Part shown: positions 1 to 14,854 of the stretch, in pieces
How the letters are laid out: each line of letters opens with the position of its first letter
Position numbering within the stretch: position 1 is the first letter of the stretch
NCBI RefSeq assembly: GCF_000143415.4
Contig: NW_003314296.1
Coordinates: forward strand, 725,645 to 789,644
Source: Selaginella moellendorffii
Lineage: Eukaryota > Plantae > Lycopodiophyta
Length of the DNA: 64,000 nucleotides
Direction of reading: 5' to 3'
The notes under the pieces: model-generated
The model's database searches: none
The model's input: the letters and a program-made list of their open reading frames with translations, nothing else
Told to the model about the DNA's origin: nothing
Made by a program: the position numbers and the translations under genes

Positions 1-350
1 GCAACCAGTGACATAATCCGCCTTGAACTGGCAGCCGTCATTGTAAGTCTTAATACCACACTTGGCGCAGTTGCGAGCACGGAGTTCGTCAAAGGCAGTG
101 ATCATCTCGGAGCCATTGAGGTCGCAGTTGGAGCCAGAGACAAAGAGGCCACAGTGGCCAGAGCAGACGCCGCTGGAGCCTTTGTTGCCGCCGGTGAAGT
201 AGCAGTTGCTAGGCTGAATCTGGTGGCGAGCAGCATCCAGTGTAGAGCCAGCGCACGAGTAGGAGTCCTGAGCATGAGAGCCCCGCAACAACATGATGAT
301 CATGAGATTCACAAGACATTGAGAGCTAGCGCCATGTTCATTGACTTCAT
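1..350 (-). CDS. KP4 killer-toxin-like small secreted Cys-rich protein; runs off the window edge, 5' end possibly frameshifted
   Basis: Hand translation of 303->1: MIIMLLRGSHAQDSYSCAGSTLDAARHQIQPSNCYFTGGNKGSSGVCSGHCGLFVSGSNCDLNGSEMITAFDELRARNCAKCGIKTYNDGCQFKADYVTGC. It has the N-terminal xCxGS, the CxxCG and the terminal (D/N)YVxxC pattern of KP4-family proteins. An upstream ATG at 350 (MKSMNMALAL) is one base out of frame with the hydrophobic CLVNLMIIMLL. Confidence 0.7.
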
Positions 351-383
351 GGTTACTAAGTTACTGATAGATCTCGAGCCCAT

Positions 384-391
384 TATTTATA
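384..391 (-). promoter_or_regulatory. TATA box candidate for the KP4-like gene
   Basis: TATAAATA on the minus strand, about 35 bp upstream of ATG 350. Confidence 0.45.
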
Positions 392-1014
392 AGGTGTGGG
401 CGGGCACAGAAGCGGGTCTAGCTTTGCTCTCCCAGCAAGACTTCCAAAACTTAGGCGGTCAAGGAGGGACTCAATTAAAATTGCATGGCCTGCCCAGAGA
501 AGCGTGTTTAACCTTGCTTTACAAGTCACAACTTGTTTAGACGGCGACTTGTTCACATAAATGAACACGATCCCGCGAGAAGGCTTCAGCTGTATTTTAT
601 TAAAAGTCCATTTTCTTTGTTAAAATTTGCTCTTTGGTAGCCGGCAATAGTGTTAATATATATCAGCTTGATCGACATGGCCCAATTGACCGAGTGTGAA
701 ACCTGAGCCATCGCGTCCATCAGGCCGATGGCCCAATCTTATTTTGATCATAAGATTTGGTGGTGCGGAGGTGGCATACGACAGGTTCGGCATGTTCTAG
801 CTGGCTGCCGAGCCCGATATCACTCAATGATTGTCATTCTTTTCTTTTCTCACACTTAATTTCAGCTTGGATTTGTGTCAGTCAATTTTACTTACATTTA
901 TGTAAAACTGTTTTGTTTAAGATGCTTCTAATATATTTTATCTCATGGTATATATATATTTCGATTAAATTTGTATTTTTGATTTGCTTAAGCAAACCTG
1001 TAAGAGTGGATATA

Positions 1015-1871: not shown

Positions 1872-4800
1872 ATGGGAAGCTCTCCATCTCCAGATTGCTT
1901 GGAGCCGCCGCAAGGATCTCTCGTCTTCGCATTGAATGGAAATCGCGTGGAGCTCCACCATGTCGATCCCTCCATGACGCTGCTCGCGTTCCTCCGCAAC
2001 GAGGCGGCGCTCACGGGCACCAAGCTCGGCTGCGGCGAGGGTAAGAATCCATCGATTGATCGCTCTGAGCTCTGGAATCCCGATATTTCGAGCAGGAGGA
2101 TGTGGAGCATGCGTGGTTCTTGTGTCCAAGCACAACGCCTCCCGCGGCGAGAGCGAGGATTTCACCGTGAATTCGTGCCTGGCGCCTCTCTGCTCGCTCC
2201 ACGGCTGCGCCGTCACGACGATCGAAGGCCTGGGAAACTCCCGCGACGGGCTCCACTCGATCCAGAAGAGATTTGCGGGGTTCCATGGCTCGCAGTGTGG
2301 ATTTTGCACGCCGGGTATGTGCATGTCGCTCTACGGCGCGCTGCGATCGCAGTCCAGGCCTACGCAGACGGTGGATTTGGAGAAATCCATCGCTGCGAAT
2401 CTGTGCCGCTGCACGGGCTATAGGCCGATCTCCGATATTTGCAAGAGCTTCTCCAGCGATGTGGATCTTGAGGACCTCGGGATAAATTCCTACTGGAAGC
2501 TGGGAGATACGCCGGATAGAAATCTCCTGCCGGGCTACAATCCAGGACTGGAAGGTTCTCGGTTCCCCGACTTTCTGGATCGTCAGGATCACTCTCTCGT
2601 TGCTCTGGGTTCTACGAAGAAATGGATTCGACCGGGTGGTTTGGAGGAAGTTTTCACGATGCTCGAGAGGTATCAAGACACGGCCAGGCTCGTAGCTGGA
2701 AACACCAGCACAGGGATTTACAAGGACGATCTCCAGTCCAGTCCGGAAGTTTTCATAGAGATTGGTGCCGTTCCAGAGCTCCTGGAGGAGAAAGTTATCG
2801 AGGATGGGATTGAAGTCGGTGCTGCCGTGAAGATATCCAAGCTTATAGCTCTCCTCGAAGCTTCTGGCCGCAGTGATTCGAGCGGAGTTTATCTCAAGTT
2901 GGCCGAGCACATGAGAAAAGTGGCAACTTTGCACGTACGAAACGCCGGGAGCGTGGGTGGAAATCTGATCCTGGCACAGAAGCTCGGCTTCGACTCCGAC
3001 ATTGCGACTATACTGGTTGGAGCCGGCGCTTCGGTCAAGGTGGTGACGCAGAAGTTTGGAGAATCACGGCAGTCTGTGGAGGACTTTGTGGCAGCTACCT
3101 GGGACGGGAAAAGCATTCTAAAGTCGATCTGCATCCCATCCTACAGCAAGCAGGACAACGTCAGGTTTGACTCATACAGGGCATCACCTCGGCCTCTCGG
3201 AAACGCCGTGGCTTACGTGAATGCGGCGTTTCTCGTCAATCTCTCGGGTGACGGACGAGTTTGCGAGTCGAGGCTCGCGTTCGGTGCTTTTGGAGGAGAG
3301 CCTACTTGTCAGCGTGCTACTGAAGTTGAGAGGTTTCTCGAAGGGAAGGTGGTGGACGGTGGAGTTATGTTGGAGGCCATCCAGCTCGCGAAGGTTTGTA
3401 TAGTGCCGAAGAAGGGGACCTCGAAGGCCGACTACAGGTCTTCGCTTGTTGCGAGCTTCCTCTTCAAGTTCTTAAGCTCTCTAGCCGCTCCAAGCAGCAG
3501 CATTGTACCTGAGCTCCCGTATGTTACACAGGCCCAGAATGGAAGCACCCCGAGGTCGTCAAGAAAGATCATGTCTGGGAGACAGACATTGCAAGAACAT
3601 CTCCAGGGAGCTGTCGGACAGCCAATGTCCAAGGTTATGGGAGAGCTTCAAGCTTCAGGTAAGCTGTTCTGTTTTGGTTTTAGTTTTTGTTCTTAAAACT
3701 TCTCTTCAGGTGAAGCTATTTACGTGGATGATATTCCAGCTCCGAGGGACTGCGTGCACGCAGTCTATGTTTACAGTACGAAAGCATTGGCAAAGATAAA
3801 CGGAATCCGGCTGGAGAATGCACTGGCTTCGCCTGGCGCGCTGTCCTTCGTTGGAGTTGATGACATTCCTTCTGGCGGACAGAATATGGGCCTCGTCTCC
3901 GATCTCTCTCAAGAAAAGCTCTTCGCCGAGGATAAAGTCGAGTGCGTGGGCCATGCCGTCGGACTTATGGTAAGCTACGGACGAATCCATTGATTTTAAA
4001 CCTGTCCTCGTCCAGATTGCGGACACGCTGAGAAACGCCAAGGCCGCCGCCGGCAAAGTTGTGATTGATTACGACACGGAGTCTGTCGGCTCTCCCGTGC
4101 TAACCATGGAAGAAGCGGTTGCCAGAGGGGAACTCCACGAGACCCCACAGTTTTTCAAGGCTATGATGAAGGATAAACACGGTAATGTTGCCGAAGAGAT
4201 GGCCAAGGCCAGTCTTAAGATCGAAAACGCTGAGGTAAAACGGAGCAATTTTTATTTTGCAAGCACGTTTTGATCACGAGTGGAACTTCCAGGTGGGCAC
4301 AGGGTCGCAGTACTATTTCTACATGGAACCACAGACTGCGTTGGTCGTTCCGGACGAGGACAACTGTCTCGTCGTCTACAGTTCCTGCCAGAGCCCCGAC
4401 TTTGTGCAACACAGCGTGTCAGCCTGCCTCGGCTTGCCCATGCACAACGTGAGAGTCATCACCCGACGAGTTGGCGGAGGATTTGGAGGCAAAGGCACCA
4501 AAGCCTGCCTGGTAAGTAGTCTACAGTTTTGCATCTTCTTGCATCAAAACTATGGTTTTTGTTGCGAGCACTTCCTTTCTCTCATCTTCGTTTTCTCGCA
4601 TTCCCTTTTACACCCTTGCTTCTAAGCATGAATCGTGCAGGTTGCCTCTGCCTGTGCACTCGCCGCGTACAAACTCCGCCGCCCCGTCCGCCTCACTCTC
4701 GACCGCAACACAGACATGATCATGATGGGTGGAAGGCACCCAATGAAGGCCGTTTACGACGTAGGCTTCGAGCCCGACGGCAAGATCAACGCCCTCCACG

Positions 4801-8700: not shown

Positions 8701-11307
8701 ATGCCGCTACTGAGGCAGGAAGTTTTCTTGCTGGCTGAGACGCCAGAGGATTTGTCGCCCGACGAGATGGTGTTCCAGGTCCGGTTCACGAAGGAGATTT
8801 TTCGGGACTATGAGTATGTGCATTCTTTCTTTCATAGTTCTCGGTTTGAGCTCCTTGATGTTTTAATGCAGCGAGTATGTGAGACGCATGAATCTCTATC
8901 GGCAAAAGATATGGACGTGCAAAGCTACTCGTCGGGAAGGTCTCACTTACGAGAAGGCATTGGTTTCGGAGTGTCGAGCAGCTCAAAAGGCCGAGTTTCC
9001 GAAAGATTTCATGGGACCAGTTCTACACCTGGTCCAATTTAGTAAGTGATCGACTTGGAATTTTGTTCTGTAACATATTGTCCTATTTCTGCCAGGTGAG
9101 CTTGAGATCGATGAGCTCGTTGACCACGTTTTTACGACTCTCAGCGATAGATTTGTTCCTGGGGAGGAAATCCCAAGCATTGCCGACGATGCGAGACGGA
9201 AGTGCAGGATACTTGACGTCTCTGAACAAGATGGAGAGAATGGTACAAAGGCTTTAAAGTACGAAGTCGGCTGGCTCGATGGAGAAGGGCAGATTACCGA
9301 GAAGGCTGTGGAGGATCCTATCAACTTGATGAAGAGAAAGCTACCGTTTACAAAAGAAGCGTTGAAGAAGTTTATTCAGGAGTCAGCTTATGGAGAAGTA
9401 ACGCTGGACATGCCTTGGTTGGTGCGGGACAAGCTCGCTAGGAAGTTCAAAATACCTTTTGATCCACCGAAAGAGGAGAAGCAGTTGCACACTAGACTCG
9501 ATCCGACTCAAAGACAAGTCAACCAATCTTACTTTGTAAGTGCGTGATGTTTCTTTCTGTCTTCTTACTGCCTTTCCAGGACGAAAGTTTGCAAGATGCC
9601 GATGTTGAGTATACAGCTCGAAAGCGCAGCAAGAAATACAGGGATTGCGGATCGAGTGGTAGATCAAAGAAAAAGTACGATGGTAAGCCGTCATATCTCT
9701 AGAAATTGTATCAGTCTCTGAATGGATGGTTGTTTCTGGCCAGGCTATTCGTCACCCTCCGAAGATCTCATGGATGATAATCTCCTTGAGCCAAACCCGG
9801 ATGATCCTCCGTTACCGGAACGGCCTGTGCCTTCCACAGATTTTCCGCTCGAAGCTGAGTGTATCGGCGCTACATTGATGGTGTGGGACTTTTGCAACTC
9901 ATTTAGCACATTGTTACAGCTGTCGCAGTTTTCGTTGTACGATTTGGAGAAGGCACTACTTTATACGGATGGCGAATCCTCGCTCTTATCGGAGGCGTAT
10001 TTTGCCGTTTTTCGCGTTGTCCTTGGCGAGCAGGGGGTTAAGCAGCGACTTGCCCAACGTAGAAAACGGAAAGTAATAGTAAGTACCTTCTTTCATTCGT
10101 TGATCTTTCTTACTCGATGCCATGCAGCTTTCTATAGATACATGGAAGGATGATGTTTGCGACTATTTGGAGCTCGAAGGGCCTCAAAAGTTGAAACCTT
10201 ACCTGTCAACAATTCGGACAGACTGCTACTCTAGGCTACCTGTCTTGTCCAAACTGGAGATATTCGAGGAGCTAATTGAGAGAGCCATCAACACCACCGC
10301 GATTCGCAGTCACCTGGACGAGAACATTGAAGAGTTCGAGAGTCTTTCCGCTCAAAGACGTGGCGAAGGCCTCCCGATATCCATGAGAAAGGGCTCAAGG
10401 TTTACGGAGAAAGCTAAAGCAACCGAGAGTCTGGAAAATGGCTGCACTGAAGATGTTTCAGAGTGCAAGCCCAAAGAGTGCCTGCACGAAAATGGATGCT
10501 TAATCGGGTGGCTGAAAAAAGGAAAACGGAAACGGAATGGTAACGCTGATGCAAATGGCGTCAAGAGGTTGAACTTTTCCTTCTTTCTCTTTGTGTTTTA
10601 TTGACGGGGGTGTGTTGACAGGGAATACAGCGCACGTTGTTTGTTCTTCAATAGCTCGAGGCAGACGTTGTTTAGGTGTAACAGAGTCGAACTTCACGAT
10701 GAAAGGGAGCCACAAACGGAAAAAGAAAGGGCTGAGTCTGAGCTCCAGAAAAGACTGGTACGTGTGGTTTTTTATTTTGTTCGTTTATTATCTTGTCTAT
10801 CAAACTTCAGGAGCATCTCGATCGTGAACTCGAGAAATGCACCATTCGGATGAGCCCGCTAGGGAGGGACCGCAACTACAATAGATACTGGTTTTTTCAT
10901 AGGGAGGGACGCATTTTTGTCGAAAGTGAAGACGCAAACAGCTGGTCTTTCTACAGTTCAAAGAAGGAAGTAAGTGTTTGAGTCAAGCTTGGATTGTCAG
11001 TTCGCTGACCTGTGTGGGCAAAGCAGCTCGATGAATTGCAGGAATCTTTGAACCCGAAAGGAGCAAGGGAGAAAGCTTTGCGGGACCAAATAGAGAGCAC
11101 TTACACTAGAATCAGGTATATGGTTTGCTGTTTAGTTTTTTATGGCTAAGAGCTTTCCATTTCAGTACTTCGATGCAGAAACGGTCCAAGGATGTAGCTC
11201 AGAGAATAGCTCTAGAAGAAGCCAACATACGACGATCACTACGGGTGCAGTCAGCTCCCCGGCCCACGGGGTTCTTAGCATATGTGAATAAGAACAGGAC
11301 CGCTTGA
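8701..11307 (+). CDS. WAC + DDT + WHIM domain chromatin protein (ISWI-complex subunit, DDW1-like), multi-exon
   Basis: N-terminal WAC MPLLRQEVF..VFQVRFTKEIFRDYE..WTCK. DDT IGATLMVWDFCNSFSTLLQLSQFSL. WHIM1 YSRLPVLSKLEIFEELI. WHIM2/WSD IRMSPLGRDRNYNRYWFF..WSFYSSKKELDELQESLNPKGAREKAL. Confidence 0.9.
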
Positions 11308-13384: not shown

Positions 13385-14854
13385 ATGGCGGAAGTGGCGA
13401 AGCTCCGGCGCACAGTGTTCCAGCGTTTTCGCTGCTTCCCGAGCTGGTTGCAAAGGATCATCGCCAGGACGCTGGGCTGCAAGGTCCGCTTCCAGAAAAT
13501 CCTCGGCTGTGGATCTTTCAACCTCGTGATCGAGGCACTGCTGGATCGTCAAGAGGATGAGCAGCCACGCCGCGTCGCCATTCGAATCGGGCTCCCAGGC
13601 GAGCTCCGGGTGCCACTGCCGCTCGCAATGTCGGGCTACGCCGCGACGCTCTTCCTCGCGAGGCTGGATCTTCCCGCCGTGATCGCAGGGCCTGTCTACG
13701 TGGCACGTCCACCTCTGCCCTACTTACCACGTGGCCGCTCCCACTTCGCTGTCATGGGCGTCGCCGAGGGCGTCCCCGCCAGCAATGTGTGGAGCAAAGA
13801 CGCGACGCTGGCGTGGAAGAAGGCCGTGCTGGCTGACCTCGCCATGGTCACGCTCCAGCTCTATCGCCACCCGTTGGATTCGCTGGGCAGTATGGAGGTC
13901 TCGTCATCCGACGGCTCTCCGTGCGTGGGGAGAATGCTGCAAGGTGCCGTGAGCTTGGCAATGGAGCGCGGCATCGAAGTTGGCGAGCTCAGCCCCGGGC
14001 CTTACTCGTCGTGGGCGGAATACGCAAGGAACCAGATCGAGGGCTTCGTGTTGCTCTACGGGGATGATCCCAAGCACGGCAAATCCATCAGAGCCAATGC
14101 CAAGCTCGTGCTGGATTGGCTCGTGAACAAGTTCCAAGATCCTGCGGAGAATGACAATAAGTTCCACAAGTTCCAAGCTCTTGGGAAGAATGACATCAAG
14201 TTCCAAGATCTTGGGGAGAATGACAACAAGTTCTACCTTGTTCATCCCGAGTTTGGGCTCCCGCAAGTTCTGCTCGATCCAGATTCTGGGCATGTCACCA
14301 GCATTCTGGACTGGGATGGTGCCAAGACTGCGACGATCCACAGCCTTGCCGCTGGTTTCTACATGCCGGACTACTATTGGTATGACGATCCCGATGAAGA
14401 TGAGATGTGTGAGTTTTTCAAGCAGCAGCTGATCCAGGGAGGAGCGCCGGAGCTGGCCGAGCACTTGACACAAGAATCTCCTCAGCTCATTTTTGAGCAG
14501 CAAAGGCTTGGTAACAACGTGGGTGGCGTGGATAAGGTGCAGGCTGCATTGCGGAGCTTTTGCACGAGGTTGCAGGGACTGGGGATGATAGATCCCCAAG
14601 AACAAGTCGTGTGTAGCATCATCCAGCCTTGGAGCAAATCGTCGCGCTCTTCGTCATCGGCTTCTTCTGCTGCTTCATCATCGGCTTCTTTTGCTGCTTC
14701 ATCAGGCTCTTCTTCGCCAAAGGAAGAAGTTAAAGCACAAGAAGAAGACTGTGGGTCTTCCACGGAATCAAGTGAAGATGCTTCTTCTTCGTCTGAAGGA
14801 GAGGAAGAAACAAGTTCTGAGGAAGAGAAGGAAGGTGGCGAGTGTGTAGCTTAA
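13385..14854 (+). CDS. Intronless aminoglycoside phosphotransferase (APH)/choline-kinase-like protein, possibly a pseudokinase
   Basis: 489-aa ORF. N-lobe GCGSFNLV..RVAIRI, GRMLQ..GPYSSWAEY, catalytic-loop region FYLVHPEFGLPQVLLDPDSGHVTSILDWDG, and a Ser/Glu-rich acidic tail. Confidence 0.75.
   Translation: MAEVAKLRRTVFQRFRCFPSWLQRIIARTLGCKVRFQKILGCGSFNLVIEALLDRQEDEQPRRVAIRIGLPGELRVPLPLAMSGYAATLFLARLDLPAVIAGPVYVARPPLPYLPRGRSHFAVMGVAEGVPASNVWSKDATLAWKKAVLADLAMVTLQLYRHPLDSLGSMEVSSSDGSPCVGRMLQGAVSLAMERGIEVGELSPGPYSSWAEYARNQIEGFVLLYGDDPKHGKSIRANAKLVLDWLVNKFQDPAENDNKFHKFQALGKNDIKFQDLGENDNKFYLVHPEFGLPQVLLDPDSGHVTSILDWDGAKTATIHSLAAGFYMPDYYWYDDPDEDEMCEFFKQQLIQGGAPELAEHLTQESPQLIFEQQRLGNNVGGVDKVQAALRSFCTRLQGLGMIDPQEQVVCSIIQPWSKSSRSSSSASSAASSSASFAASSGSSSPKEEVKAQEEDCGSSTESSEDASSSSEGEEETSSEEEKEGGECVA
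14124..14234 (+). repeat. Coding ~30-bp tandem repeat inside the APH-like gene
   Basis: aagttccaagatc(c/t)tg(c/g)ggagaatgacaa units, translating as NKFQDPAENDNKFHKFQALGKNDIKFQDLGENDNKF. Confidence 0.8.

Follow-up and report, generated by a model that had tools for sequence, protein, structure and literature searches.

A probable young pseudogene of the MU117 (PF15474) family in Selaginella moellendorffii and its KP4-fold relatives across land plants

The left end of the window (the whole stretch of Selaginella moellendorffii DNA analysed here, 64,000 nucleotides of contig NW_003314296.1, positions 725,645 to 789,644) carries on the minus strand of its positions 1–350 what we take, at a probability of roughly four in five, to be a young pseudogene, or at least a null allele, of the S. 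moellendorffii MU117 (PF15474) family. The preliminary description of this DNA had proposed a working antifungal or developmental peptide; this is unlikely for the window copy because it is frameshifted and has lost conserved cysteines, and we infer that it no longer functions. Intact members of the family are predicted to have the fold of the Ustilago KP4 killer toxin, and those of plants form one group from liverworts to angiosperms. All positions below are those of the window.

The open frame, its family and its fold

Direct translation of window 303..1 (minus strand) gives a stop-free frame of 101 codons with 9 Cys, which opens MIIMLLRGSHAQDSYSCAGS, closes GCQFKADYVTGC and also holds SYSCAGS, GHCGLFVSG and NCAKCG; the frame, its cysteine count and every motif quoted for it earlier, GCQFKADYVTGC included, were found again when the sequence was re-read. 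It was also correct that the gene is unannotated, that it is intronless (the paralogous genes are likewise single-exon, 387 and 381 bp long), and that the frame is missing from the list of open reading frames, which is because it reaches the window edge. The features of this region that can be read directly or by comparison with homologues are as follows:

384..391, minus strand: putative TATA box TATAAATA, read directly; the family ATG follows about 35 bp downstream
309..350, minus strand: remnant of the original frame, with the ATG at 350..348, 13 codons MKSMNMALALNVL and a premature TGA at 311..309 (translation, alignment and tblastn)
1..303, minus strand: open frame that carries the remainder of the signal peptide followed by the MU117 / KP4-fold domain (translation, Pfam, alignment and models)

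The last codon of the frame, TGC (3..1), is the family's final residue (..VTGC) in an alignment with 16 homologues, nearly all of which end in ..VTGC or a near variant (..VSGC, ..VNGC). Since the homologues end at the same place as the window, nothing but the stop codon falls outside it; the gene does run off the edge as had been stated, but loses almost nothing there. The “signal-peptide-like start” MIIMLL..AQ of the preliminary description is indeed the tail of a signal peptide, but the true family start is the ATG at 350..348, in another frame: the signal peptides of the paralogues begin MKS(T/M)NMALALNVL(V/L)VVNLMIIMLL. In a DNA alignment the upstream region is near-identical to those of three paralogous reference loci (L001, L005 and L006).

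MU117 is the “meiotically up-regulated gene family”, named after S. pombe mug117, and is described as a fungal family, whereas the window copy lies in a lycophyte and has relatives across land plants. The window frame matches PF15474 at 44.4 bits (E 3.3e-11; curated gathering score 30.4 bits) over profile positions 16–105 of 105, and a protein search with it returned 26 proteins of 118–164 aa, all of them PF15474, with plant homologues down to E 1.5e-49; both values are far above chance. Intact plant members score 59–70 bits over profile positions 1–105, and all 42 of the plant and fungal relatives that were aligned match MU117. Plant and fungal relatives have in common a framework of 10 Cys and the motifs xCxGS, CxxCG and YVxxC; the window copy departs from this norm in that it lacks profile positions 1–15 and two of the Cys, and, judged from its sequence and the paralogue alignment, it appears to have no N-terminal signal peptide whose frame continues into the domain. 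The Pfam Kp4 model (PF09044, gathering score 27.8 bits), which had been expected to recognise this gene, does not match the window frame even at E ≤ 10, and the family to which it belongs is MU117 instead. Among 10 further relatives (nine plant proteins and P0026, discussed below) the Kp4 HMM matches only the Adiantum protein, at a sub-threshold 14.4 bits. It reaches E ≤ 1 in 20 of the 42 family members (best 2.2e-5), some fungal relatives matching weakly, and one Atlas cluster mixes PF15474 and PF09044 members.

The AlphaFold model of an intact paralogue, SELMODRAFT_431177 (P0001), was built on a 42-sequence alignment and has a mean pLDDT of 85.5 (models range from 82.7 to 85.5); values exceed 90 over the greater part of the mature domain. 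The model of the window frame reaches 75.5 (five models, 45.8–75.5) and has a shortened first helix, a comparison that is soft because the window-frame alignment was shallower. Foldseek places 1kpt_A, the Ustilago KP4 toxin, first for the P0001 model (E 7.8e-4), and VIA-align superimposes the two with Z 12.6 and rmsd 2.2 over 94 of 105 residues (model 31–128); the next matches are Zt-KP4 (8ACX, Z 10.1) and a fungal glycan-binding protein (5V6I, Z 6.9). The window-frame model likewise matches 1KPT best (Z 10.1, rmsd 2.5, 85 residues), followed by Zt-KP4 8ACX (Z 7.9). Because both models match the Ustilago toxin best, the KP4 fold call holds, so that of the KP4 identity first put forward for this gene the fold stands and the Pfam Kp4 family does not.

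UmV-KP4 (1KPT; PF09044) covers the whole mature domain as the best structural match, but is only ~20% identical to MU117-family proteins. When solved structures were searched by sequence, neither the frame by itself nor a 17-sequence profile found KP4, so the link is seen by fold search only. The toxin has five disulphides (PMC12382754), which fits the 10 Cys of the MU117 family. A structural survey places a fungal cluster with a PF15474 representative in KP4 structural group 3, and UmV-KP4, Fusarium KP4L and three Physcomitrium patens KP4 proteins, all PF09044, in group 1 (PMC12382754). Ginkbilobin-2 / DUF26 (PF01657), an antifungal domain listed as plant “KP4-like” (PMC12382754), has a distant fold likeness to the present family (Z about 5); it is a far weaker match than KP4, with no sequence relation and another Cys pattern.

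Lesions of the window copy

The window copy was aligned at the DNA level with five S. moellendorffii reference genes (those at L001, L005 and L006, and two at L002), and the following features emerged from this and related comparisons:

1..681, minus strand: duplicated segment in common with L001, comprising the gene and about 330 bp upstream (blastn)
314..315, minus strand: junction of a 7-bp deletion; L001, L005 and L006 read TTAGTTG or TTACTTG there
237..238, minus strand: junction of a 27-bp in-frame deletion that removes CRGLAQSDC with both its Cys (DNA alignment)
223..225, minus strand: copy-specific CGC>CAC (Arg>His) at a CpG (paralogue comparison)
202..204, minus strand: copy-specific CGC>TGC (Arg>Cys, in the N-R-Y motif) at a CpG, which makes a ninth, unpaired Cys

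Neither deletion is present in any of the five paralogous genes. The 7-bp deletion at 315/314 shifts the frame within the signal peptide, and because these 7 bp are missing, the TGA at 311..309 is met 13 codons past the ATG at 350; tblastn of P0001 against the window gives two matches, in different frames. The 27-bp segment is bordered in the paralogues at both ends by ACTGTG, a microhomology of the kind expected if slippage or microhomology deletion had removed it, and in the reads comparison paralogue-derived contigs stop exactly at 238. Of the two Cys lost with it, one is invariant and the other at least 90% conserved among the 42 plant and fungal members. There are four copy-specific point changes, all of them transitions and three of them at CpG; two are in the conserved Arg codons listed above, and the other two, at 342 and 52, are silent and have no effect. 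The earlier count of 9 Cys is right, but these are eight of the ten family Cys plus the new one made by CGC>TGC, and the 10-Cys MU117 framework is incomplete. Values of dN/dS between the copies rest on 3–12 changes per class and are uninformative because the substitutions are so few.

These differences suggest a history in which a ~0.7-kb segment with its promoter was duplicated to give the window copy, after which a 7-bp deletion would have caused translation from the normal ATG to stop after 13 codons, and a 27-bp microhomology deletion would have removed two conserved Cys; CpG transitions would account for the changes at two arginine codons. A product started at the internal ATG at 303 would have no usable signal peptide and an odd number of Cys, and for these reasons should be neither secreted nor correctly folded. 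The frame is nonetheless still open over 101 codons and its promoter region is intact, which implies that the decay is recent or that the locus might still be transcribed.

Contigs from three runs guessed to be RNA (X5, X11 and X12) were searched for transcripts of the window copy, and none was found; X5 and X12 carry the spliced transcript of a neighbouring aldehyde-oxidase gene, so RNA is present in both, and X11 gave no contig that mapped anywhere on the window. The sole contig that touches the window copy, from X12, matches window 238–293 and runs on both sides into sequence absent from the window: it has the 27-bp segment on one side and signal-peptide sequence of the P0002/P0190 type on the other, and therefore shows a transcribed paralogue and not the window copy. 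A disabling lesion and no sign of expression, by which a pseudogene is recognised, were thus both found, the second with the reservation that contigs cannot prove the absence of RNA and the silence of the locus is not proven by them.

The most serious competitor to the pseudogene reading is that the gene is intact in the plant, where it would encode a working MU117 paralogue, and that an error of assembly or consensus produced the 7-bp frameshift and perhaps the 27-bp gap as well. Both deletions are known from one assembly only: the DNA run covers positions 1–700 with no listed indels, with no contig seen to bridge 315/314 or 238/237. The remaining frame is moreover open, and the promoter is identical to those of working copies. 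On the other hand, a 7-bp loss outside a homopolymer and a 27-bp loss between ACTGTG repeats are atypical of polishing errors, two more copy-specific changes fall on conserved Arg codons, no protein from the locus is annotated on the collinear scaffold (below), and the search described above found no RNA contig of the copy; we consider such an error unlikely.

Less probable again, and by a clear step, is a leaderless 9-Cys product from the ATG at 303, without the first loop and the start of the helix, that has taken on a new intracellular role. Its 101 codons are open and its model is still KP4-like (Z 10.1), but the upstream ATG at 350 with its short open reading frame would come first, a fold rich in disulphides is not likely to form in the cytosol, the product has lost two conserved Cys and gained one that has no partner, and the five models disagree with one another; the lack of an RNA contig in the three runs counts against this product as well. 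A young pseudogene or null allele remains our preferred description of the window copy.

The locus and the other copies in Selaginella

Similarity to the paralogous loci is confined to window 1–681 (blastn), and because it spans only this interval the window copy is a separate locus that arose from a small segmental duplication carrying the promoter. Its nearest paralogue is SELMODRAFT_406182 (P0188, L005), with 96.2% DNA identity. This gene, SELMODRAFT_431177 (P0001) and SELMODRAFT_429946 (P0002) are 92–96% identical to the window copy in DNA, promoter included, and have a single exon as it does, but all three have a full signal peptide and all 10 Cys, where the window copy has two deletions and two Arg changes. 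A tandem array continuing to the left had been suggested; tblastn with P0001 gave no second MU117 copy within the 64-kb window, and such an array is not shown.

The window copy lies 1.5 kb from an aldehyde-oxidase/xanthine-dehydrogenase gene (window 1872 to ~6400, plus strand). RNA contigs of that gene from two runs begin at 1880 and have a 55-nt GT..AG intron (2040–2094) removed; its collinear reference model has 923 aa and no 2Fe-2S domains, and may be cut short at the N-terminus. Scaffold GL377606.1 of S. moellendorffii runs collinear with window 3201–24821, to the right of the window copy, at 96.6–97.8% identity; the window would accordingly represent a different haplotype or accession of that species, or else a very near relative of it. 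No MU117 protein is annotated on GL377606.1 among the members of two 90% clusters, which fits a copy that the annotators could not model.

Fungal contamination is excluded by the spliced, expressed plant neighbour and by this collinearity, so the placing of the gene in a vascular-plant (Selaginella) genome was sound. One might still think of contamination, or of a fungal gene that entered this plant alone and very recently, given that the family outside plants is fungal and the genes are intronless, but we give either next to no weight in view of the plant gene 1.5 kb away, the collinear scaffold, nearest relatives that are plant proteins (58–84% identical, against about 50% or less in named fungi) and a tree (below) in which plants form one group with the angiosperm and Selaginella branches together.

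Two other features of the window were recorded. An intronless 489-aa open reading frame at 13385–14854 (plus strand), described at first as APH-like, has as its only relatives found five S. moellendorffii proteins (SELMODRAFT_419177 at 93%, the others at 47–53%); some of these are named aminoglycoside phosphotransferase in UniRef, and none has a precomputed Pfam domain. A search of public assemblies for its exact product (13385–14851) gave no match, and the 93% relative pointed to the collinear scaffold. The AT-rich interval at about 1000–1300 is a high-copy repeat: summed contig depth in the DNA run rises there to ~12,000 from ~20–30 in the flanks, the interval shows several internal joints, and it is also matched by L002:10990–11312.

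Damage is seen in other copies as well. L006:10001–10714 (GL377583.1), the other-haplotype allele of SELMODRAFT_431177, has lost 1 bp within the TGCAGGGG codons. Its annotation, SELMODRAFT_412646, is a 104-aa spliced product whose N-terminus is unrelated, probably an artefact of the gene model in which an artificial intron was placed around the broken allele. L002 holds two MU117 genes in opposite orientation 5.4 kb apart (4258–4641, minus strand, and 10001–10381, plus strand), which flank an RPE65-type gene. In P0189, the protein of the first, Tyr replaces an invariant Cys and Ser an invariant Gly, and there are two additional Cys; because of these changes it too looks decayed, though annotated. 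With the window copy, the L006 allele and P0189, decay of copies is frequent in the Selaginella family. The window locus by itself adds little, being a further decaying member of a multigene family of small size; it illustrates how gene finders miss MU117 copies or mis-model them, as with the artificial intron in the allele with the 1-bp deletion.

Distribution, origin and possible role of the plant family

The family as a whole is small: of 1.84 billion representatives, those that belong to it fall into 128 clusters at 50% identity. Its plant members come from liverworts (Marchantia, Riccia), mosses (Ceratodon, Sphagnum), the lycophyte Selaginella, the fern Adiantum and angiosperms (Artemisia, Orobanche, Cuscuta, Apium, Ranunculus), many of them on chromosome-sized contigs, and its fungal members from Onygenales, Mycena, Auricularia, Neofusicoccum, Aspergillus and others. 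Plant relatives are 58–84% identical to the window frame, and named fungi about 30–52%. The angiosperm members (P0005, P0008, P0009, P0012–P0015 and P0027) are patchy in occurrence, which might reflect loss, sampling or transfer between plants; Orobanche and Cuscuta are parasitic, and in Apium a single chromosome carries two or more copies.

A maximum-likelihood tree unites all named plants and some further sequences in a single group (support 90/82) from which named fungi are absent; the angiosperm clade is well supported and adjoins Selaginella (87/81), and plant terminal branches are short in comparison with the fungal ones. The family is consequently not peculiar to Selaginella, and the phylogeny of fungal and plant members that was called for (here without P. 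patens sequences) places the plants as one group beside the fungi. Because the family is one group across land plants, any transfer from fungi would predate the split of bryophytes and vascular plants. The distribution fits, as far as sequences in an unrooted tree can indicate, a single ancient origin that preceded the radiation of land plants, with vertical descent and patchy loss thereafter. Basal to the plant group stand P0026 and P0030 (L003, from Logan run SRR23143851), which are 60–64% identical to plant proteins and have a long fungal-style pro-region with a ..NG.. motif, P0026 also having a KR site before the domain. The pro-region hints that the nearest outgroup is fungal, and these two proteins are candidates for the closest fungal lineage.

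KP4 genes of mosses have been described in P. patens (Yue et al. 2012, PMC3493653; Guan et al. 2023, Plant J 113:665, cited in PMC11228847 and PMC12382754), and are reported to affect protonemal development and Ca2+ gradients. Like the MU117 family, P. patens KP4 proteins are plant-encoded, secreted, of KP4 fold and apparently fungal in origin, but they are PF09044 proteins of group 1 reported for mosses only, whereas the MU117 family extends from liverworts to angiosperms. No P. patens protein is among the named matches to the window frame. The tie to the moss KP4 transfer that the preliminary description drew does not hold, since moss KP4 is PF09044 and group 1 and the present family is PF15474. 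Any fungal origin of the plant MU117 genes would, on the sequences compared here, be ancient and distinct from the moss KP4 case already described. The literature that we searched on MU117 and plant KP4 yielded no description of plant MU117 genes.

Intact S. moellendorffii members are ~125-aa precursors with a signal peptide followed by a ~98-aa 10-Cys KP4-fold domain. They are predicted to be secreted alpha/beta sandwich proteins with five disulphides, a number suggested by their 10 Cys and the five disulphides of UmV-KP4. UmV-KP4 and moss KP4 disturb Ca2+ uptake or gradients (PMC12382754), and by analogy the intact members may have a conserved extracellular target, perhaps Ca2+ channels or Ca2+ gradients. 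That they are so strongly conserved points to a fixed and possibly endogenous target, and away from an antifungal role in an arms race. We therefore put forward, tentatively and as somewhat less likely than its contrary, the broader proposal that KP4-fold MU117 proteins, 58–84% identical from liverworts to angiosperms, descend vertically from one ancient exchange with fungi apart from that of moss KP4, and that their conservation, unusual for a Cys-rich secreted protein, reflects a fixed endogenous target. If this is true, tip-growing or reproductive cells might carry that target, for example as a Ca2+ channel or a receptor.

Plant “KP4” has so far been a moss curiosity gained from ascomycetes. 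A second KP4-fold family, MU117, is present in each major land-plant lineage sampled, and Selaginella has copies of it that are intact and transcribed. This raises the question, which can be tested in Marchantia, of what role a secreted protein shaped like a killer toxin has inside plants.
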